Assembly (NCBI GenBank): GCA_963924565.1
Contig: OZ004611.1
Span: 20,336,001 to 20,400,000 of the forward strand
Source of the DNA: Ascidiella aspersa
Lineage: Eukaryota
DNA: 64,000 nucleotides
Reading direction: 5' to 3'
The stretch's first letter is position 1. Each line of letters starts with the position of its first letter. Below are positions 19,201 through 35,412 of this stretch, piece by piece. The notes under the pieces were generated by a model that was not told the DNA's origin, did no database searches, and saw only the letters and a program-made list of their open reading frames with translations. Made by a program: the position numbers and the translations under genes.

Positions 19201-22200
19201 GGCAAGGACTAGTGCTCTTACCGTTTCTGTCTTTAAACAAATCGTATTTTCAAGTGTTTTTAGGGTCATTAATATTCATTTCAATAGTTTTAACACCTTT
19301 CTTTCTAATTTTTTGTAAAAAAGTGACAATGACTTTTATGAAATCATGTTTTGTGAGTGCGCTTTTTAATATTTTGTTACTTTGTTCGAGGTCGAATTCC
19401 ATTGTCGGTAAATTTTAAAGCTTACTTGTCATTTACGGTCTAGTCATGGACCGAATATTTGTCGAAACTCCACATTTTGACATAAAAATCATACACACAA
19501 TTCAAAATAAATTCTACAAATACCAAAACCTTTGGTGAGCAAAGTCGTTTTGGAAACGTCGGGAAATTCGTTTTTGCAGCGAACAACATAGAACAAGTAT
19601 TTTTTAAACAGTCGACAAAGCCATAATACCGTGATAAACCATGTAATTCCAAAATTTGGTTGCAAGTATGTTAAATCGTTATTATAAAACAGTAAATTTA
19701 GCTAGCAAAGTATCCAGGAGCCTTCGAACTACAAATCCGCGTAAAAGTCCGTATACCTGAGCGTACTCAGCGTTTCGTCGTAGTTGTTGTCAGCGGGCGA
19801 GAGGCAGGCCACCATCAGGGTCTTGGTGTTGCCGCCGAGCGAGTCCTGCAGCAGGCGCGTAAGTTTGGAGTCGCGGTAGGGAATGTGCCTCGACTTGCCG
19901 TCCACCAGAGCCGAAATCACGTTGCCTGTGGAATTAGATAGGAGTAAGTTGAAGACATGTTCTAGTAGCGAAAACTGCTGTTTCGATCCTAAGCTTTCTG
20001 TTTTATAACTGCTCTGGGTAAAAAAGGGTTAGTCTCGTTTTCAGTTTTTTGAAACGTATTATGTGGCAAGAATGTTCTCAACCGCCAGGGCATGACCTGT
20101 TGGCTGTGAGTGTTCTGCAAATAACGCGGTCCATAGCTACATGATAAAGCTGAAATGGCAATAAATTGTACAAACGGCCCACAGTGCCGACTATTGTGCT
20201 TCACTCTATACCAGCGGTCTCTAAACAGGGGTCCGCGGACCAACTGGGGTCCGTACAGCAGTTTCAGATAGTCCGCAATGAGAATTAGTCTTAAAGTTTT
20301 TAAAAATATAAACATTAGTCATGTTTTAAACACTATCTGTCTTCGTTCTTAGTCTTTAGTTATGGTTTATTTTTCGATGACATAGCGTGTTTCATGATGT
20401 TTCTTGTGACATCATAAAGCATCTATTATGCTGTACTATACCTGCTATAAGCGAATCGTTCGCATTAGTTAGAAAGTTGTAACATTAGAAAAAATCCTGA
20501 CTGCACTAGTTGTACTACAACAAACACGGGTTAACTTACCCTTGGATTTTTATAGGGCCGCGAAGTTTCAAAATAATTGCAACGGGTCCACCAGGCAAAA
20601 TTTTTAGAAAAGTTTAGGAACCGCTGCTCTACATGGAGGTTTAAGATTTCAAGACCCAAAAGTAGACAAACCAATTTTCACTGAGTGTAGCTTACCAAGC
20701 GCGGACAAAGACAGATTGATCTTGGTGGCTTCCTTCAGTCGGTCTCCGGTGGCGCCGGTTTTCGATTGACGCTCGCTGCCGGCCAGATCGACCAGGTTCA
20801 ACTTTCCCGCACGAATGTGGTCGCCGCCGTCGATGCCTATCATTGGTCATGGCAGGTTTGAAAATAAACAAACACGTAATAAACGCCCAAAAAACGTTAG
20901 GCAACGGTGTTTTAGACCCCAAGGCAATAAAACATGATAAATCTAAACAAGTTGAACAGAACCACTTCAGTTTTACGAAAACAAAACAGGTCTAACATCA
21001 AGGCGATCAATTTCCGAACCAAAAAAGCAATGTGTCTTTGCAAAATACCACAAGGATTTTATTAAACAATTGTTTTAATAAAAAGGATAAATTTTAAACC
21101 CCATAAAGATTTTATCAAATGTGCCAAATAAGGATAAACAAATTGTTGATTTTAAAGCGAACTTTTTTAGAAACTATATGGAACAAATTTGAAATCGGAC
21201 TTTTGAAATTGTTATACAGTTTTAAAGTTCTAAATTTTTCATTCTTCAAACTACCTGTTTGGTAGTTTCAGTATTGATACCGCATTCTTTTACACAACAA
21301 AAAATATAGCTGCTTTGTTTTACTAATATCCGAACAACGATTATATGGAATTTGCTTTAGCAACACCTTGTTTACTGATTACAACATATGAACACAACAC
21401 ACAAAGACGAAAAACGTACCTCTAAGAAAATCCCCTGTATGCGTTCAACATATAGAATATTAATTATTTATTAGACAACTGAGAAACAGTAACACGTATT
21501 TCTGGTTTAATCCAAAATGCATCTTGTAAAAGTAAAACATATGCGTTTTGGAATACTGGTCAAATTGGGTTAACATGCAATATTATTTTTTCCTAAAGAC
21601 TAATTTATCGAAAAAGACTAATCGAAAATACTAATTTCCGTTTGAAAAAGGAATGATGTTCACACCACTGCGGGGTTTCTTAAAATTCGGTAAAATTTAA
21701 CAAAATAATGAAAAAAAATACAGGGAGTGGAGACAAAGCCGGACTCGGGACTCGACAAAGTCGCAAATTTGGCCGTAGTCGGACTCGGGCACAATGGTTT
21801 GCCCGGCTTGATAGTTTGGAGAAATAAGCCCCACACTCTATGCGAGGATTGGGGCAAATCCAAATTCACTTTACGCTACAATAGTGGAAAATTACTTGTC
21901 CCGTCATATCTTGTTAAACCAGTGGTTCCCAACATTTTTGTTGTCGCGACCCCCTTGCCAGTTCTTGCCAGAGAGTAGGCTAAAGGTGACTCAAAAACAC
22001 GACTAGTTCACTCAAGCAAATTCGTTAACGTAGTTCTTAGACTGGCACATTATTTTACTCCTTACAATGCCAATTTGTTTGCATTGTTTTGTTTCTTGTT
22101 CGGCAAGTAGTACACGGCGACTCCCCTGACAACCTATTGCGACCACCTTGTTGGTCGCGACCCCTAGGTAGGGAACCACTGTGTTAAACAGACAAAGGAG

Positions 22201-25200
22201 TAATACCCATGTCGCACGCCTCCAGGTAAATGGTGAAGATTGAGTGAGACCGCGACGAGTCGGCATTCATCAGAGTCGATCCAACCGTCCTGTTCTGCCA
22301 CCCAGTGGCCATGACGCGCTCGCATTCGGTCACGTTTCCCACACGTTGCATGTAAAGGTCCTTGACGTAGACGCCCCGGTCCGGGTGTTCTTTCAGCTTA
22401 AATAAGTTTAATTTTTTAGAAGGTTTATTTTTTTTTAAACAGGGGAAGTGAAGCTTTTCTTCTCCTATGACCTTTCCCAATAAAGCTCTAAAACTGTAAT
22501 GACTTTGTCACTGTTTTCAAATCACCTGACTTGTCTTTGTGCAAAAATATTTAACTTTACTTTCAATTGGTTTATGGTGTTTATTCTGCGGAATACTGTT
22601 TCGAATATAATGAATTTAATATTTTTATTATTTCAACAATTATTTTTGATGCCAATAACTTGACTTGCTATGGCAATTACTGGGACTCGACTTGTTATTT
22701 ATTGAAAATGATTTGACTCAGACTTGAGGTATTTTGCAAATGACGTGGCTGGAACTTAAATCATTTCAAAATGACTTAATTACAACTCTGCTTCTTGCTG
22801 ACATCTTAACAATTAAAAACACAACAAGAAACATTTGCTTTTAAATGTTAACCTAAAAATCCTGTTTAAAGAGAGTTAAATATAATTTGCCATATAAATC
22901 GTTATGGGCATCGTCCCGCCATAAACATAGAAAAACACATTTAAACACAAATTAAAACCAACTATAAATATTTACAAAACTGAATAAGAATTCTTTATCA
23001 GTGTTATTTTTTACGGTGACTTTCCGAAAATAAGACGTCTTAAATTGGGCAAATAACTTGCTAAGCTTGGCAATTTGTATTGAAGTTGATAAAAGAACGG
23101 TAGTAATTTTTTTTTAATTTTCCCCTTGCTTGTATATCTGGTTCCCTAGATGTGTTACACTTTACCACTACTGTATAGTAATGACAAGAGTGGTGTATAA
23201 AAAAGATATACAAGCAGAATATACATTTACGTTTTACCTCTAGCTTGTCTTTGATATTTTTGCTAAGCAAATCACGGACATCTTCATTGTAGATTTCTAA
23301 GTAACTGGCATGGACAAGGTATTTTGTGTTCTCCGCAATCTGTAGGAGTAAAACAAACAATTCGCATATTTTTAAAACAAAATACATTCTGGACCAGTGA
23401 TACTCAAACTTGGTGTAGCAGCACAGCAGTGTGCCTCATGAGATTCTCAAGTGTGCCAGGACAACTAATTTTGTAATTTAGGAAAGAAACTATTCACCTG
23501 AATGCACACTACTTTTTACTAAACTGATAACTATGATATTAACTTATTGCCTCGTGTATTAAATGTGATTGCCAAATTACAAAACTCGTTTTTGTAGAAG
23601 GTATGCCTTTTCATTTTATTAGTTTATGGGAAGCTAAAAAAGTTGGCGAATCACTATTTTAGGCAAGTATTCTCAACTTTTGGGAGTGAAAGCTTTATAA
23701 ATGAGAAAAACTATTTCTTAAAATACTATTTGACAAAAAAGACAGGATATTACAAAATGACTCACAGGCCAGTCAGCGTTATTACACATATACAAAGGAA
23801 CTACATTGTTGATGGGTAAACTGAATTGGCCCTAATTATACTCATATCAGATTACAAACGTCTGTCAGTGATGTAACTTTAGTTTTACATACTGATATTC
23901 TCAATCAAAGAACTGCTTCATGAGTGAACAGAAAATTAAAAAAACAAAGACCAAACGTTTCTGTCAACATTATTAGACTGATTAAGTATCATAAAAGATT
24001 AGCAAACTGTGTTAAAAATAATATAGAAAACCAAATAGTTTTAATGTCAATCATCAAAAAACAGAAAAAATATGTATAATTATGGGCCTACACTTATTTC
24101 ATCTTCATATCAAAAGAACTGTTTATTAGCAGCTAATATATAAAATATACTATTATTAACAACAACAGTTTCATATCTTAAATATCCCAATCCAAATGTT
24201 TAGCTATAAAAAGTTTCAATCAAAATAAATCAGTAAAACATTATCTCACTTCTATGCTCTCAAAAATATGCTGAAAAGCTCTCGGAATGACGCCACGCTG
24301 GGTTGGAGGGTCATCGACCCCTTGCATGCTGAACGACTTGCCACATCCAGTCTGACCATAAGCAAACACTGTCCCATTGTAACCTTCCACAACACCCTGA
24401 ATAAAACAAACTAATTAGGGAGGAATAAATACAAAAACATGAAATATTGTTTGGTAAGTTATAAAGGCTCTCACTTCACCCATTTTTGACAGCAAACTGC
24501 TAGTATATCGATTTAGGAACAGCTAATTGGGTAATAGAAAGGAAGCACTGATTGAATTATGTAACCAACATTTAATCATAAACCACACTGATCCAGTGTC
24601 TTAATGAAATTCCGGATAAATGATGACTACAAAGCTAACTTTTGTGCTAGCTACGGATGTCCGCAATTGCTAAAAAGTAGTGCCATAATTTTCATCCTGC
24701 TACTTCAATCTACACATACTAATAAACGACTTTATATTTATTTATAGATAAAGCCTTACAAAATGTATTAACACAAAAATATTTTTGTCTCTAAAAATTT
24801 TTATTTAAAAATGCATTATTTCCCCCCAAAATAATAAAAATCTTCTAAAGGCACAGGATATGGTTTAAACATTTACAAAGCAGATTTTTTTGTTTTTGTG
24901 CACAATTTTAATGACCAAAATAAATCTCAAAGTCTTCCTAATTCACCACCAAGTTATAGAATGAAAATAAATTGGTACTTGGAACCTTTTCAATTATCTC
25001 CTGTAGTGGACTTGACAGGATTTGGCAGGAAGCACAACGAACATACTTGTGCAGGATTGACCGCAAGTGTTTTTATCTGTTAGGATAGCATTGGGCCTTG
25101 ATTGTGCCAAAGTACCTGGCTTACTATTGTCGGACGTTTAAGGGCTTTCAAAAAGGGAGTGAGCTCTTAAAGTTTAAATTAGGAACTTAATTTGGTATAT

Positions 25201-26281
25201 CTAGAGATAAATTCTTACCTACAAAATATTTATAAAAAGAATACAAATACTTATAAAAATAAATTTGGAATAGGCATCTATGGTTTCAGATGTTATGAAA
25301 TATGTCCACACAATACAGCCATATGAGCATTTCAGATTATGCCTTTTTTCTCACATTTCTAGATTACCAAAGTGTCAACTTTCACACTACATACAGAAGG
25401 ATCTAGGTAGAAATAACAGACTATGAATTATTCATTCAACATTGTTAGCAAACCTATAGAACCAGATTTTGCACAAAGGGGGAAGAAAATTGAACAATAA
25501 ACAAGCATAGCAACACAGCACCAATGTAGTGTATTTTGTTAAATGAATTTATAATATTTATTTGTAAACAGCCTATGAATAACAATATTTGATTCATACC
25601 AGTTTTCAAGCAATTGATTTTGGAAAAGGTTTGAATGATTCAGATATGAATATAACTATTTTTTACACCTTTATATTTATACTACACAAAAACTTTTTTA
25701 CCATTTTTTTTATATTTTAGTAAGATTTGATGTCATTTAAATTCAAAGCAAAGAAAAAATACATCTACCCAAAGGAAATATTTATTTTCATATAGTACAT
25801 TTGCTATATACACAAAATGTGTTTTTTTTAACTGAAAGTGAGTTGAGCATTATCACCAACCTCCACAAGCGGATATGCAATGTCATTGTAAATTTGCTCT
25901 GTTGTTGAGTCAACATAGTAAGCACCGTCAAAAGTAAATTCCTTTGGATTCTGCTCAGAACCTGGCTTTCTGATGGAACACTTTCCCATATCTTCAAGCA
26001 TGTCAACAATAGTCTGTTTAGAAAGAAATGAAGAACTTAAAATTAAAGGTGATTTGGGAAACATAATTTCATCTTATTTTTGGATTTCAATAAAAAGCAC
26101 ACATTAAAAAAAACGAAAGTTAAAATAGTTTTTTGATTAAATAGAGATGAAATTGATTAAAGACGCAATAAATAACAGTTGAATCTAAAAAGAATAAACA
26201 TGACAATACCGTGCAGTTCAACTTTTTCTCTCTCTGGTTTAGAGGCCGGCATCTTACTATCACCTTTACTGCCTCGGCCAT
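1237..26281 (-). CDS. KIF17: Kinesin-2 family homodimeric motor KIF17/OSM-3, spliced, 22 coding exons, about 1002 aa
   Basis: Hand-assembled exons, all GT-AG and phase-consistent: 26281-26210, 26013-25861, 24396-24250, 23339-23238, 22396-22207, 20836-20696, 19925-19757, 19062-18920, 17769-17725, 15589-15480, 14696-14573, 13815-13769, 13104-12814, 12013-11951, 11014-10931, 10113-9968, 8955-8736, 7657-7547, 6408-6258, 4523-4426, 2494-2362, 1505-1237 (sum 3009 nt). Motor motifs: [21 protein letters not shown]-loop [75 protein letters not shown]. Tail motifs like KIF17: [24 protein letters not shown], ending [27 protein letters not shown]. Stalk exons (17.7-10.9 kb) are less certain than motor and tail exons. 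Confidence 0.95.
1927..2151. mobile_element. MITE with GCCCGTTTACACT termini (PIF/Harbinger-like) and (CAGCT)n repeats
   Basis: 13-bp perfect TIR extended by imperfect arms; AGCTC pentamer run at about 2070-2095. Confidence 0.65.
2562..3460. mobile_element. Non-autonomous hAT transposon (899 bp) nested in another hAT MITE
   Basis: TIR CAGGGGTCCG(G/C)AAATAC; perfect 8-bp TSD CTCTAAGG (2554-2561, 3461-3468). Host element starts CAGTGGTTCTCAAC at 2525 and resumes at 3469. Confidence 0.85.
5166..6105. mobile_element. Non-autonomous DNA transposon with 8-bp TSD (hAT-like, 940 bp)
   Basis: TIR CAGGGTT(G/A)CCA; perfect TSD CCTATATT (5158-5165, 6106-6113); subterminal GTGCTTATTT repeats at both ends. 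Confidence 0.85.
6536..6809 (+). mobile_element. tRNA-derived Pol III cassette (SINE-like) enclosed by ~40-bp imperfect inverted repeats
   Basis: A box TAGCTCAGTTGG, perfect T-arm GTGAG-TTCGAAC-CTCAC, T7 run at 6685-6691. Inverted repeats 6536-6576 and 6728-6767. 24-bp direct repeat at 6687-6710 and 6786-6809. Confidence 0.7.
8200..8453. mobile_element. Degenerate hAT MITE
   Basis: CAGTGTTT...AAGTACTG ends; TSD GCTTAGCA/GCTTAAAA; internal GGGTGAA repeats. Confidence 0.6.
8981..9264. mobile_element. hAT (Charlie-like) MITE
   Basis: TIR CAGTGATTCCCAAACT / AGTTTGGGAACTACTG; perfect TSD CCATACAG (8973-8980, 9265-9272). Confidence 0.85.
13124..13494. mobile_element. MITE of a GACTT-rich family (CAGTGTTGT...ACAACACTG)
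   Basis: Terminal inverted repeat plus many GACTTGACTT motifs. Related pieces near 4.15-4.33, 7.73-8.13, 9.27-9.93, 22.5-22.8 and 45.1 kb. Confidence 0.7.
14148..14532. mobile_element. hAT-like MITE with GGAGTCGG/CCGACTCC subterminal repeats
   Basis: Perfect TSD TTAACAAC (14140-14147, 14533-14540); same family as 51867-52182. Confidence 0.75.
15252..15415. repeat. Imperfect palindrome (~57-bp arms)
   Basis: GTAATGAGAATATCAA...GTATCATTTTGAACGTTTCGAATAACTC mirrored at 15351-15415. Confidence 0.75.
20212..20626. mobile_element. hAT MITE
   Basis: TIR CAGCGGT..CTAAAC; TSD CTCTATAC/CTCTACAT; GGGGTCCGCG subterminal motif shared with 61146-61695. Confidence 0.7.
21920..22181. mobile_element. hAT (Charlie-like) MITE
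   Basis: TIR CAGTGGTTCCC; perfect TSD TGTTAAAC (21912-21919, 22182-22189); GTCGCGACC motifs. Confidence 0.85.
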
Positions 26282-29431: not shown

Positions 29432-32400
29432 ATGGATTTCCACAAAATGAATTGGTTTATTGTCTTGATATTCATTATTCAGGTATTTGAGGTTTTCTGA
29501 AATTGTAAAAGGTAGATTTGTTAAATTTTGCTCCCATTACGGTGGCGTAATAATTTTTTAACAACTTATTCCGTTGTCAGTGCTATTAGCCTACCTTTAA
29601 AAACAATGGGAGAGTATGGGACAGTTTATCTAGCGTAAAAATACGTACTATAGAACTGATTGTTTTATGGCATTTTGGTAGTCGCAGTCCAGCGTTCATG
29701 CATTAAAATATGGCTTTTTACATCAGGGTGCATACGCCTGTCGACCACAATGGCGCCTGCAGGCGCGCGCTGTGCTACAAGAAATTTTCAACCTGGAGCC
29801 GGAAAGAATGGTGAACTTGCACGAGAGTGATGGTCGACAGCAACAGTCGATGTCGCTTGAAAACGTGCTGGTCAACCAACGGCCGCCCGACGATGATCCT
29901 ATTCACCCTTTCTTTGAACCGTTTTTGTTTTACACTGATCACGGCGGCTGTTACGAGGACGGTAAGCACAAGTGTCAATCATGACGGTTACCAATGCCAT
30001 AAGGTACAGTCAAATTTAAAGCAAGCGGAACCTTATAGATCTGCTAATTCAACTTAACTAATATTCCTCACAGGTTAGAAACGCACTTGGGCAACAGTAA
30101 AACAATAAGTAATAATTTAATCAACAAAAATATTGAACAGAAATCTGTTTGATTTCGAAAGGCATATGACGTCACAATTAAGCCATACCGTTACGTAAAA
30201 ATTTAATAAGCTTAAGAAGCATGTTGTTATCGAGCGAACTGCTATATGTAGGCCTACGTAAAGTTAATCGAATAAAGCAATTATTCGCGGCGTTCTGCAT
30301 CATGCCAACCTAATTTGCAAAATAGGAGTTGTATGACTCAAACAGATCGGTATCGGCATAGCTTGCATTGCAATATGTATGTTAACAGCGGCACAATGTT
30401 ATAATACTAGAAATCACGCATGCGTACATATGACCGGTGAGATTTTGCAGTGCTGATGTGAGGAAAATCTTGTCACAATGCATAACGCATTACAACCACA
30501 GGTGACGCGCAAAGTTACACGGGCGAGATCTCCAATACTGAATCCGGTCTTCCCTGTGCAAAGTGGAGCCGATTCACTCACCTACTGCACCAGCGTCTGC
30601 TAGCCGCTCAGGAGAGAAAGAAGGTCAAAATCACGGAAAACCTATGGAACCTGCGGCCAGTAGATAGCGGTAAAGAGGAAGCCGAGATCTTCGGACTGAA
30701 TTTCACTATTCGGGAAATGCGCGACAGAGGTAGGCAGGGTGCGATATAAACCTTTTCAGCGTTACCAAGACTTCTCTTGATGATCTGAGTTCAATGTGAA
30801 ATAATGTATGAGCATAAATAAAACACTTTTAAATATTATTGCAATTGAAATGTCTACAAAGGCTGTGGCCTTTGATAACGGACTGGTATTCCGACAAAAC
30901 TTTAGTTTTTTGGCAAACCACCATTTCTAGAATAATGTTTTAGACTGCACCTAAATGGATGGTATTTAAATGTTCTTTTGTGTTTCCAGTGAAAACAGAT
31001 CTAGCAGTATGTTTCGTTGCAAATATATTGAAAAATAGATTTAGTAGTTTTTCGTTACAAATATATTGACAAATAGATTTAGCAGTGGTTCTTTACAAAT
31101 ATATTGAAAAATAGATTTAACAGTTTTTCGTTACAAATATATTGACAAATAGATTTAGCAGTGGTTCTTTACAAATATATTGAAAAATAGATTTAACAGT
31201 TTTTCGTTACAAATATATTGAAAAATAGATTAAGCAGTGTTTCGTTACAAATATATTGAAAAATAGATTAAGCAGTGTTTCGCTACAAATATATTGCAGT
31301 TGACATAAATCGAAGATGCTTTGACGATCGTTGGCGAATAGCCGTTATCGGTCGAGTTTGTTTTGTCATGCGCTTGTGATTCAGGCCTTCTTGACCACAA
31401 TTTCTGTCGAGACCCCGATAGAAGCGGCAAACCCTGGTGCTACGTGGAGACGAAGAGTTTCATGATCTGGCAGGCTTGCAGCATTCCCAAATGCGTGAGT
31501 CGGAAAAGAAGAGAACGTCCCGCGGGCCAGTTGCGGCCCTGAACCCACCTATCCGCGGCATATTGCCCTTTAATGAAGATATTACAGTATACAGTTGAAA
31601 TGTTGTTGGATACAATAGCAAACTAAATTTCGGCAAACCTACAAACAATAATTAAGTTAGTAAAATTCGACCCAAGTTTTATATCCGGCCTGCAATCGTC
31701 AACCCCTACAGTTAACCGGCCCTTTATAAAATACAATTTAGTGACCCCAGGGTTACAACAATGGCCTGTATAGTGTATATACAGTGCACACTTAAAAGTG
31801 CTCGTTAAACGTTTTACGATACAGGAGTTCTACTGATATTTGAAAGTTAAACACTGTAATTTTGATTCCCGCCATGAGTCAGCTGCTTGTCATCCTAATA
31901 TCTAATATCCTGTATGAATGTAACAAAATTGTCTATAGGCTGCACGACGTGTAGGGCCATTATTTACGAGCCATGGTAGGGGAGCTTCTATGAAAGCGTT
32001 GCCACCCCTATACTTTCCCATACAACTTTTTTATACAATTGATGCGTGGCGATTAGGTTATAAAAAAACTGATTTCCTAATAAAATTTTTTATATCACTA
32101 GCAACATGCTTACAGTATATCCGCGATGTGTTAATGTGTAACCTTTTATGGGTGACTCCAATAGACTCCATGTTGGCGAATGCGACAGAAAACCAAGCGA
32201 TATCTGCTTGTGCCACCTTTGCTGGACGAAATGTGGATTCCCGAATGCACCTTAGAAGGCTTATTCGGCCATTTGCAGGTTTTTAAACAACTGAAAAAAA
32301 AAATGCTGTAATATTGTTATTGAATAGAGATATGACATTATGCAAAAATAGTGTTTTAATCCAATTAAAGCGGTCGTTAACCGAGACATATCAGGCCGAT

Positions 32401-33316
32401 GTTGGTCTAAAAGTGATAATAAGTCAATTGGTTGATAAACATATTGTCTATTTTTCTTTAAAAGCGCGTAATCTGCAATAAAAACAATTTTACAACTATG
32501 CTATACAAATCTAACCGTCAAGGATCCCTTTTCACACCCAATATAATATTTTTATGTTCAGTGCTGGAAATCGTATTGCTGGTGTTCAGAAAAAAGCGGT
32601 CGGCTTATTCCTGGCACCTTAACGCGAAAGTCTGATGGGGAGCCAATTTGCGGTTTGTATTCCAAAGTGAATATTAGATTTAAATATTGCAAATAAAACT
32701 AAGAAAACAAAACAAACTATTTGTGTTTTGGCTGGCTTATAGTTGGTTTATTTAGTGGCTAACCTTGAGCCTCATTCCTTTTTCCGAATAACATGTTTTA
32801 AGTACACATAAACCCATGTGCTTTCACTTTTATTTTTATTGTAGAATGACCTGCAATATACAGCCAGGCTTTCACAATAATATAAACAGCGCACGGCAGA
32901 CGGTGCACAACATGCTGGTAGGCTAAACCATTTTACCTGATGGGTAAATGTCAATGCATGCAAAATAGTTGACTTAATTAAGATTATTTTCTTTTCTTAG
33001 AATCCGAGGGTAATCATAACAAAGGACAGCCAAAGTTGCGGAAAAAGAAGCGTCGATTATCTGCAAATAAGCCGGTAAGAGGCAAGGCCACCTTCAATTC
33101 GTCTGCTGCGACAGAAAAGCCTGCAGTCAAGCCAAAAGCACACACAAGTCACGAAAACGAGCCTCGCAAAACCAACGAGAAAACCGTCAACATGGACGAA
33201 TGGATGTGGCGAGTATTTCATGGGATTCGTCGGCCGAAAAGAGTTGTGGAGTCACAAAATACCCGCGCCGAGCAAACAGCAAAGTTCGGGCCCAAAAATA
33301 GAAATTCCGACGAAAG
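29432..33316 (+). CDS. Secreted kringle + thyroglobulin type-1 domain protein, exons 1-7 (confident 5' part)
   Basis: Phase-consistent exons 29432-29482, 29727-29961, 30502-30729, 31385-31494, 32165-32278, 32562-32652, 33001-~33316/33320. Signal peptide MDFHKMNWFIVLIFIIQGAYA. Six-Cys kringle CYEDGDAQSYTGEISNTESGLPCAKW...GLLDHNFCRDPDRSGKPWCYVETKSFMIWQACSIPKC. Thyroglobulin-1 domain PCWRMRQ...WIPECTLEGLFGHLQCWKSYCWCSEKSGRLIPGT...PIC. Basic linker with RKKKRR and RRPKR. Confidence 0.85.
30995..31296. repeat. 38-bp minisatellite, about 8 copies, intronic
   Basis: CAAATATATTG recurs at 31020, 31058, 31096, 31134, 31172, 31210, 31248 and 31286; no unique spacers. Confidence 0.95.
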
Positions 33317-33814
33317 GCAAGTAAAACAGTGTAAGCGTTAAAAAAAAAATCCGGATGAAAAACTGATAAATTTAATTAACAAGCCAGCAAAAACAAACTT
33401 CTTAGTTTTTGGTGTATGGGCCCAACATTTAAACCTAAAGTGGTTTGTTTTGACACTTTTTGTTGATATGAGTATATGAATTTTATCTCAAACATGAATT
33501 TAGAATTTTCTAGGTCAAAGCGAAATCCAATTATTTGGCTGTTGTTTCATTCTATGTTATTCTCTATAATTTAAGCCTTTATACTTAAGTTACCAGAAAA
33601 ATTTTGTATGTTTAAAATCTAAATGTAATTAAAAAAAGTAAATTACAAACTGTTTGCTGGATTTGTGTTGCATTATTACGTTTGTAAGAATAAAACTACT
33701 CTTATATGTCATAACCGGCACGGCATCTTTTCGCTTATAGACCAATATGTACCAACCTTATTAACCCCTTCAGATTATGAAACCTTGTCGACACACTTTA
33801 CATTTATGTTATAG

Positions 33815-35412
33815 TCATAAAGAGCCTGGCGACTACCAGTCGTCAACCAGCACTGAAAACATCACAATAGTCACCGAAGGTCAACAACCACGCACCTACA
33901 AATGTCAGGTACGCTACGTCACAATCAACAGCCTGCGATGCGTGACGCCGACTACGAACGAATCCGGGAAAAGCCACCGGTGCTTCATCGACGAACGCTT
34001 GCGCGTGATTGGTTGGAATTGCACACGTGACTTGGATGACGGAGCCTGGTTAGTTGGGTTGGATAAAAAAGTTCCTTAGTTGGATTTTGTAAGGAACTTC
34101 TTATTAAATTGGTTTTTATGATATTTTAAACTTGTAGAGGCTAAAATAGTTCTTAGGTGCGCGCATTTGTTTTCTACGCGCACTGTTTTCTAAACGAAAT
34201 GAAACTTGCGTTTAGCATTTTGTCACGAAATCGTGAACACTATGATACGCTCCGGAAACCGTTCGTTGGTTCAGGTTGGCATGTTTTGTAGATAATCAAT
34301 AAGATCCAACATATTGCAACCCTTTTAAATAAGTGTTTCAAGACCTGTTTAATCCGTTGTAGCTATGTCATGAAATTCGCAAGAACCCCTGCAACAGTGA
34401 CATCGGACGGTGAGCTTCTATCCACCTTTCAAGGATACAGCTACGTTTGTCTTTCAACTTTAGGCAAAGTCGTCCCAAATACAGACGTGTGAGTATGTAT
34501 ATAGTAAGTAATCAAATATTATTACTAATTGGCACGTTTCCGATGGTTTGTAAGATTGCGCCCGTGTTTTTGACCACTAAATTGATCTATTTTGAATTTG
34601 CATTAAAGTCACACGTGGTGTTCAAATCGGAATAAACAGCAACAAACTATGATAAACAGAATTTTCCCATTTTAAATCGTGCGTATACTGTCTGAACTGC
34701 GTGAGTAAGTGCGGCTGAGCTTACCAGTTTAAACCATCGGAAGTAAATCGGGAATTAATGAGATATTAGGCGTGAACGTTTTTCCTGATGAATTTTCTAT
34801 TTTGGTAAACTCATTTGGTATAAGTTCGTGCCTTGAATCATACTTGTCACGGATCAACTGAAAGAAGTCGAGTACTTTCTTCACACTTGAATTAAGATTG
34901 AAATAACAGGTTTACTAGGTTGTTTCAGATAACAGACGCGAATTCTTAACACTGAACACCATGTATGGTTGAGCAAAATCCACTAATTTTCAATATTTCG
35001 CGAATAAAAACTTGGTATAGATGTAACTATCTGACATCACATTTTGACGTCACGTTATGAGGTAACTTTGTGATGTCATCTCTTAAAATAATTATCATGC
35101 CCCCCAAACAAAATTCCTAGATCCACGCTTGTTTATGATTACTGATTTTAAACATGCTTACTGATTTATTGCAAAAAACATCAATATGGCGGCCTCTTTT
35201 ACAAAAAGAAAAATCAACGGCAAAATACCATGTTTACTAAAGTGGTAATTTATAATGCTCGCAGGTGTCGGAGATCAGATACCATACTTACGACGATATC
35301 AATGAAGCTTTTCGGCGGCGAAAAATACATTTGCGTCAAGTCGTGGAAAAACTGGCGTCTCGTCAAGGCGAATTGCGTCAAATTGACACAACAAAGAAAA
35401 TCTGAAGTTTGA
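33815..35412 (+). CDS. Probable 3' exons of the kringle/thyroglobulin gene, cysteine-rich C-terminal module (splice path ambiguous)
   Basis: GC-richer, AG/GT-bounded blocks at 33815 (or 33774) to 34011/34048 (TYKCQVRYVTINSLRC...HRCFIDERLRVIGWNC), 34216-34274, 34363-34409 and 35265-35412 (CRRSDTIL...YICVKSWKNWRLVKANCVKL...*). Several alternative in-frame joins exist. Confidence 0.55.

Follow-up and report, generated by a model that had tools for sequence, protein, structure and literature searches.

The 64,000-nucleotide stretch of the Ascidiella aspersa genome analysed here (the window; contig OZ004611.1 of assembly GCA_963924565.1, positions 20,336,001 to 20,400,000 of the forward strand) carries between its positions 29432 and 35412 what, judged from sequence comparison, is very probably one gene. 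Ten coding exons lie on the plus strand (Table 1), with AG acceptors and GT donors throughout when the boundaries are re-derived by script, and their joined product would open with a signal-peptide-like start and continue through a kringle, a thyroglobulin type-1 (TY) domain and a linker rich in basic residues to a C-terminal module that contains Cys. An earlier reading made from the letters of the DNA (the sequence-only reading) had proposed this single architecture, and both the Pfam profiles and the collinear exons of two other species bear it out. The exon stretch is free of masked or N positions, and every part of the gene that was tested is single copy in its own genome. Searches with the window were made exon piece by exon piece.

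Domains, exons and relatives

The kringle, which had been described as complete with six Cys, is recovered as such. Pfam PF00051 matches the exon 3 piece over profile positions 7-49 (23.1 bits) and the exon 4 piece over positions 46-79 (44.4 bits, cut-off 34.3), the two halves of the profile being complementary between the two pieces, as they are in the counterparts from two other species (contigs L003 and L004, described below). One of the six Cys is encoded at the end of exon 2, one in exon 3 and four in exon 4, and both N-F-C-R-D-P-D and P-W-C-Y recur across the three species. Against the PDB, the exon 4 piece finds plasminogen most strongly (5e-26), followed by angiostatin, HGF, tPA, prothrombin and Kremen. 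An insert of ~30 residues with an N-F-T sequon lies within this kringle, and both insert and sequon are kept in L003 and L004. The D-x-D of the lysine-binding site reads D-R-S, and classical lysine binding is on this evidence doubtful.

The TY domain adjoins the kringle and is likewise complete, as had been claimed: PF00086 matches the exon 5 piece over profile positions 3-37 (11.9 bits) and the exon 6 piece over positions 38-66 (22.8 bits, cut-off 20.6), six Cys are present, and the Q-C and C-W-C motifs recur in all three species. Thyroglobulin (1e-7) and saxiphilin chains are the PDB matches of the exon 6 piece. The sequence-only reading had seen no trypsin-like domain, and none emerged here, as Pfam Trypsin matches no exon piece and neither G-D-S-G-G-P nor T-A-A-H-C occurs in the six frames of 26-46 kb. 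The gene does not belong with the kringle serine proteases, and its open reading frame (ORF) closes with a stop that L004 shares.

The relatives came from a phmmer search with the exon 8 piece against 1.84 billion representatives, which returned two true relatives, P0001 (5.7e-9) and P0005 (1.5e-4), along with four repeat artefacts. P0001 lies on the 2.3-kb Logan contig L003, and P0005 on the 29-kb eukaryotic contig L004 from a Joint Genome Institute (JGI) metagenome; a metagenome scan with the exon 8 profile recovered no species but that of L004, in three JGI samples that are 99.9% alike. P0005 (L004:10001-11194) had been called with TGA as Trp and contains four internal TGA codons; this gene-calling artefact makes its first 104 and last 14 residues spurious, and the true ORF at this locus is L004:10313-11149. 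When the exon pieces of the window are compared with the two contigs by tblastn, exons 3-9 are found collinear on one strand of L003, between 102 and 2043, and exons 3-10 collinear on one strand of L004, between 1261 and 12036, with E values of 1e-12 to 1e-26 for exons 3-6, 8 and 10. The three species are fairly divergent, and identity per exon ranges from ~23% in the linker to 78% in exon 4 of the kringle. Exon 3 is 49% identical to L003:102-326 and 45% identical to L004:1261-1485; the corresponding values for L003 and L004 are 78% and 72% for exon 4, 47% and 55% for exon 5, and 63% and 73% for exon 6. Exon 10 is 46% identical to L004:11926-12036 (E 5.6e-13), where a basic tail and a stop are present too.

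The splice sites of the relatives are canonical and their intron phases are those of the window (phase 1 between exons 3 and 4, phase 0 between exons 4 and 5 and between exons 5 and 6, phase 1 between exons 6 and 7, and phase 2 between exons 9 and 10). In L003 and L004 alike, a single unbroken ORF holds the counterparts of exons 7, 8 and 9, so that linker and C-terminal module are directly joined. As a comparison of sequences, such collinear exon matches in two other species exceed chance by far, and with the shared strand and intron phases they place the kringle and the TY domain in the same gene, in agreement with the sequence-only reading. Profiles of linker plus module and of exon 3, together with residues 125-345 of P0005, retrieved nothing beyond the two known species from 5.8 billion clusters.

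In the window itself, the phases of exons 1-7 fit and their junctions create no stop, just as the sequence-only reading had it. From exon 7 to exon 8 there are three in-frame paths (33328/33815, 33320/33774 and 33320/33825), with products of 554, 565 or 548 codons. An in-frame stop lies three codons upstream of the exon 1 ATG. In exon 1 a short charged start leads into a hydrophobic core of ~11 residues; Q-G-A-Y-A comes next and spans the junction with exon 2. The 10-residue Kyte-Doolittle mean peaks at 2.77, and an A-x-A motif is present. In its hydropathy and its A-x-A motif, the predicted N-terminus is consistent with the shape of a signal peptide. Exon 2 has a short candidate counterpart in L004, ending in C-F-T-Q-K before a phase-1 donor at L004:418. 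The N-x-T sequons in the kringle insert and at the start of the module are conserved in all three species, and from these, the domain types and the N-terminus we infer that the product is secreted and glycosylated.

The basic linker, the C-terminal module and the genomic setting

The linker of ~105 residues is rich in Lys and Arg, which make up 28 of the 108 residues encoded by exon 7 and 26-27% of the linker in all three species. The two clusters that the sequence-only reading had pointed out, R-K-K-K-R-R and R-R-P-K-R, lie exactly where it had placed them (Table 1). In the region of the first cluster the relatives have K-K-K-R-K (L003) and R-I-R-R plus R-S-K-R (L004); in the column of R-R-P-K-R, there is R-K-T-R in L003 and no site in L004. 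Each of the three species thus carries at least one dibasic or furin-type site in the linker. In the AlphaFold model of P0001, the predicted local distance difference test (pLDDT) score of the linker is below 50 except in a helix at 47-56, which is the W-x-x-R-x-F-x-G motif. DNA contigs from another individual (run X1) have C>A at 33235, a change of P to Q that keeps R-X-K-R. Between the domains there is an R-X-K/R-R or dibasic site in a region predicted to be accessible, as in convertase-processed precursors. Read from sequence, the features of the linker would suit convertase processing and glycosaminoglycan binding equally well.

The module that follows is ~190 residues long and has a conserved N-x-T sequon at its start. 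Exon 8 has 17 invariant columns across the three species and four invariant Cys, arranged as Y-x-C, 11 residues and C, and then R-C-F, 11 more residues and W-x-C. The sequence-only reading had counted 7-10 Cys depending on the splice path, which the three in-frame paths from exon 7 to exon 8 uphold, though only six module Cys are shared between species; the remaining three to four in the window are not conserved. The AlphaFold model of the window's exon 8 piece (mean pLDDT 79) has strands at 2-5, 13-30 and 42-59, and a second model, that of P0001, with exons 7-9 uninterrupted as in L003, has the same strand pattern at pLDDT 66-77. Because the two Cys pairs are almost equally spaced, the models suggest that they may staple one long antiparallel β-ribbon with two strands of 18 residues.

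Pfam gives no match on the linker or the module of the three species at E up to 10, and a PDB sequence search none for the module or exon 10, again at E up to 10. The fold search on the two models returned Foldseek E values above 0.5 and VIA Z scores of at most 4.2 and at most 2.3. No relative of the linker or the module was found outside the three species in the databases searched, and by sequence the module would be an orphan there. Of the Cys-rich C-terminal ligand that had been envisaged for this end of the protein, the Cys-containing module stands; the ligand idea is weak, given six conserved Cys and no cystine-knot signature, Pfam match or fold match. An immunoglobulin-like domain of the IPT/TIG type was considered and rejected: TIG clusters of the ESM Atlas scored 0.92, but recognition was below threshold with 149-156 shared features, the homologous part of P0001 gave no usable match, and there is no Pfam TIG match. 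Nor is an internal β-hairpin repeat supported, exon 8 against exon 10 being no better than shuffles. The first hairpin against exon 9 gives no more than a weak signal (25 of 2000 shuffles).

Table 1. Exons, motifs and neighbouring features, in positions of the window
Feature	Position	Strand	Description
Exon 1	29432-29482	+	ATG and signal-peptide-like N-terminus; GT donor
Exon 2	29727-29961	+	poorly conserved N-terminal region; first kringle Cys (C-Y-E-D, phase 1) at end
Exon 3	30502-30729	+	middle of kringle and family-specific insert of ~30 residues
N-F-T sequon	30699-30707	+	in kringle insert
Exon 4	31385-31494	+	C-terminal third of kringle, N-F-C-R-D-P-D ... P-W-C-Y ... C ... C
Exon 5	32165-32278	+	Thyroglobulin_1 profile 3-37
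Exon 6	32562-32652	+	second half of TY domain, C-W-x-x-Y-C-W-C ... G ... C
Exon 7	33001-33328 (or -33320)	+	basic, probably disordered linker
R-K-K-K-R-R	33039-33056	+	furin-type R-X-K/R-R, read from sequence
W-x-x-R-x-F-x-G	33201-33224	+	conserved in three species, predicted helical, directly before second basic site
R-R-P-K-R	33228-33242	+	read from sequence
Exon 8	33815-34048 (or from 33774 or 33825)	+	start of C-terminal module
N-x-T sequon	33858-33866	+	at start of module
Exon 9	34363-34488	+	middle of module, V-x-K-F-x-R-x-P ... F-Q/N-G-x-S-Y
Exon 10	35265-35412	+	end of module, G-G-x-x-Y/F-x-C-x-K-S-W-x-x-W-R-L-x-K-x-x-C-V; basic tail; TGA
Tandem repeat	30992-31296		intron 3
High-copy element	35045-35100		intron 9
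Kinesin motor exons	22187-26064	-	PF00225
ORF of 198 residues	44528-45121	+	no Pfam match

The introns at 33329-33814 and 34049-34362 are absent from the relatives, in which exons 7-9 are a single exon (L003:1474-2100; L004:10313-11149). As far as the three sequences go, these two introns confined to the window are a lineage-specific gain here or a loss in the relatives. That they might be copies of a mobile 'introner' was rejected, both being unique in the genome. Intron 8 differs from the run X1 contigs by indels of 12 and 17 bases. Five exonic differences separate the assembly from the same contigs (29951, 30590, 33235, 33294 and 34437); two are third-base changes and three are replacements at variable positions, two of them in the linker (P>Q within R-R-P-K-R, and K>E) and one, Y>S, in exon 9. 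The tandem repeat of intron 3 has a 38-bp unit in eight copies with 88% matches, and DNA contig depth is raised over it. The element in intron 9 is short and of very high copy number, its depth being ~1200 per bin (>6000 at 35061) against ~52 in neighbouring bins; at this element many DNA contigs are broken or joined in different ways, and a few RNA reads have their ends in it.

Upstream of the gene, the kinesin motor exons (PF00225, E down to 1.8e-16) belong to a gene whose 5' end is head to head with this one and ~3.4 kb off. Downstream, the ORF of 198 residues has a Ser/Tyr/Arg-rich first part and a transmembrane-like hydrophobic segment near its end, and it may be an exon of the next gene.

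Proposed hinge processing and glycan anchoring, and rival readings

On balance, the product is probably a secreted, N-glycosylated mosaic of ~550 residues with a hinge that would be cut by a furin-type convertase and held by glycans. Its predicted order would be a signal peptide, a variable stretch of ~55 residues, the kringle with its insert, the TY domain, a disordered basic hinge of ~105 residues and the β-rich module of ~190 residues. Having entered the secretory pathway, such a protein would use its kringle and TY domain to bind proteins or to modulate proteases, as the analogy with other proteins of these two families suggests, and the exposed basic hinge would serve as a functional joint. 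At this joint a furin-type convertase would cut the dibasic or R-X-K/R-R sites and so part the kringle-TY half from the C-terminal module, and the basic residues of the hinge would in addition anchor the protein to sulfated glycans in the matrix or tunic. From its sequence the hinge may be cleaved by a furin-type convertase, anchored to sulfated glycans, or both, and the chances of cleavage appear to fall a little short of even.

A kringle-TY prodomain joined to a ligand that a convertase releases, which the sequence-only reading had in mind, is plausible. A bolder version, in which the gene, still unannotated, encodes a tunicate-restricted signalling precursor whose furin-released ligand of ~190 residues has a previously unseen disulfide-stapled β-ribbon fold and whose kringle-TY half is a latency or targeting prodomain, comparable to PDGF-C/D or HGF yet made of other parts, seems rather doubtful.

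Several observations weigh against a full-length, hinge-processed precursor. The furin-type sites do not keep strictly the same place from species to species: the first cluster of L003 ends in K, and L004 is without the second site. After exon 7, the donor with the best consensus (exon end 33330) does not keep the frame of exon 8; its use would truncate the product soon after the linker, with loss of the module. In a same-species RNA run, 12 reads of unknown strandedness fall on the 6-kb stretch, mostly in exon 2, and none of them carries a junction. The start exon and the junction between exons 7 and 8 are accordingly predictions from the sequence of the window, and expression is putative. 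The structure models rest on three aligned sequences, and that of the window covers exon 8.

In a rival reading the same secreted protein is never processed but acts intact, as a matricellular or tunic-matrix adaptor whose hinge and basic tail bind sulfated glycans and whose domains bind partners. The hinge is uniformly basic in the three species while the R-X-K/R-R positions drift, and the C-terminal tails too are basic where the last exon is available, namely in the window and L004. TY-containing matricellular proteins such as SMOC bind heparan-sulfate proteoglycans (PMC10464977). Each species nevertheless keeps at least one dibasic or furin-type site, and keeps it in a region that is predicted to be disordered and accessible. 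We consider an exclusively intact adaptor possible, if on the unlikely side; the two readings are not mutually exclusive, and a processed protein may also be anchored.

Another alternative would make the main product a short kringle-TY or kringle-only protein and leave exons 8-10 as a separate or rare unit, by way of the 33330 donor, of read-through at 31494 or of spliced-leader (SL) trans-splicing of the kind known from tunicate operons. The 33330 donor is the strongest-looking one of exon 7, read-through of the exon 4 donor meets a stop at 31540-31542, and the absence of junctions among the RNA reads would be in keeping with such a product. The genome does use SL trans-splicing: the 16-nt leader reported for Ciona intestinalis (PMC1488885), followed by GT, is found 573 times in the assembly of 308 Mb, where the reversed control has 0-1 matches. 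This marks the genome as that of an ascidian-type tunicate, and SL trans-splicing and operons have to be weighed as a way in which the locus might be split. Most of these leader copies lie in 584-bp tandem arrays. Outside the window, at G000:C3:5218799-5450447, there are hundreds of copies of the leader plus GT, on both strands and with a 584-bp period. The continuous ORFs of the relatives argue against a locus split by SL trans-splicing, as linker and module are one ORF in two other species and the phase from exon 6 to exon 7 is conserved. In the window the module exons are undamaged and retain the residues found invariant among the species, and exon 8 lacks a signal-peptide start of its own, its sole in-frame ATG (33777) giving a start that is not hydrophobic. 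A short main product is for these reasons quite improbable.

The module, finally, might be a divergent cystine-knot ligand of the neurotrophin/Spätzle (or IL-17) kind. It has six conserved Cys, long paired β-strands and a basic processing region upstream; W-R-L-x-K-x-x-C-V locally resembles the C-terminal strand of neurotrophins, which is a lead only, and an IL-17A chain appears in the fold list, but only at Z 2.0. Against this, the Pfam null result extends to NGF, Spaetzle and every other profile at E up to 10 in three species, no PDB sequence matches, and the fold searches stayed at Foldseek E above 0.5 and VIA Z of at most 4.2 and 2.3. Neither C-x-C nor C-x-G-x-C occurs in the module, its Cys spacing (11, 13-22, 12, ~80, 14) does not fit that of neurotrophins, and the models suggest cross-strand staples within one ribbon in place of a knot. 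A neurotrophin/Spätzle-like module is unlikely, and of the alternatives weighed here we hold it to be the most remote. The hinge-processed and glycan-held mosaic remains the reading that we prefer.

Novelty and comparison with known systems

The sequence-only reading had matched the architecture to no named family. This holds up, as our database searches found no named family or protein with the order kringle, TY domain, linker and module, and full-text searches of the literature found no protein that pairs a kringle with a TY domain; nor do the accessions of the run and sample occur in any paper there. What appears from the sequences to be new is the architecture and its orphan domain; the kringle and the TY domain are already known parts. 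The gene seems to be absent from protein databases, and gene finders therefore probably miss it. Among living animals tunicates stand closest to the vertebrates, yet the secreted factors peculiar to their lineage have been little catalogued. If the module is a released ligand, chordates would have here a new system of extracellular signalling or matrix; otherwise the gene would be a clean case of domain shuffling joined to a de novo or fast-evolving domain. The two introns confined to this species make a small case study of intron gain or loss.

Among known systems, the plasminogen/HGF/tPA group shares with this protein a kringle that is clearly a member of the family and the build of a mosaic, here predicted to be secreted; cleavage at a basic site is also what activates HGF-type proteins. 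The protein differs from them in its single kringle, in having neither a PAN/apple nor a serine-protease or serine-protease-like domain, and in the insert of ~30 residues with its sequon. The TY proteins (IGFBPs, the SMOC, testican and nidogen proteins, and thyropins, among them equistatin and the p41 fragment) resemble it in the complete six-Cys TY domain with Q-C and C-W-C and in the predicted extracellular setting, but the IGFBP, EF-hand/EC, Kazal and nidogen modules are absent here, and none of these families is known to combine TY with a kringle. The Kremen and ROR receptors likewise use a single kringle as an extracellular binding module, and Kremen is among the PDB matches; unlike in them, neither a transmembrane segment nor a WSC, CUB, Frizzled, Ig or kinase domain was found in the exons described here.

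PDGF-C and PDGF-D consist of an N-terminal binding domain, a basic hinge with a protease site and a C-terminal, β-rich disulfide module that is active after cleavage. The likeness to them lies in this domain layout and is a functional analogy only, since the present protein has no CUB domain and no PDGF/VEGF cystine-knot signature, and no similarity of sequence or fold was detected. By analogy, then, the closest functional counterparts would be PDGF-C/D or HGF, with homology to HGF limited to the kringle.

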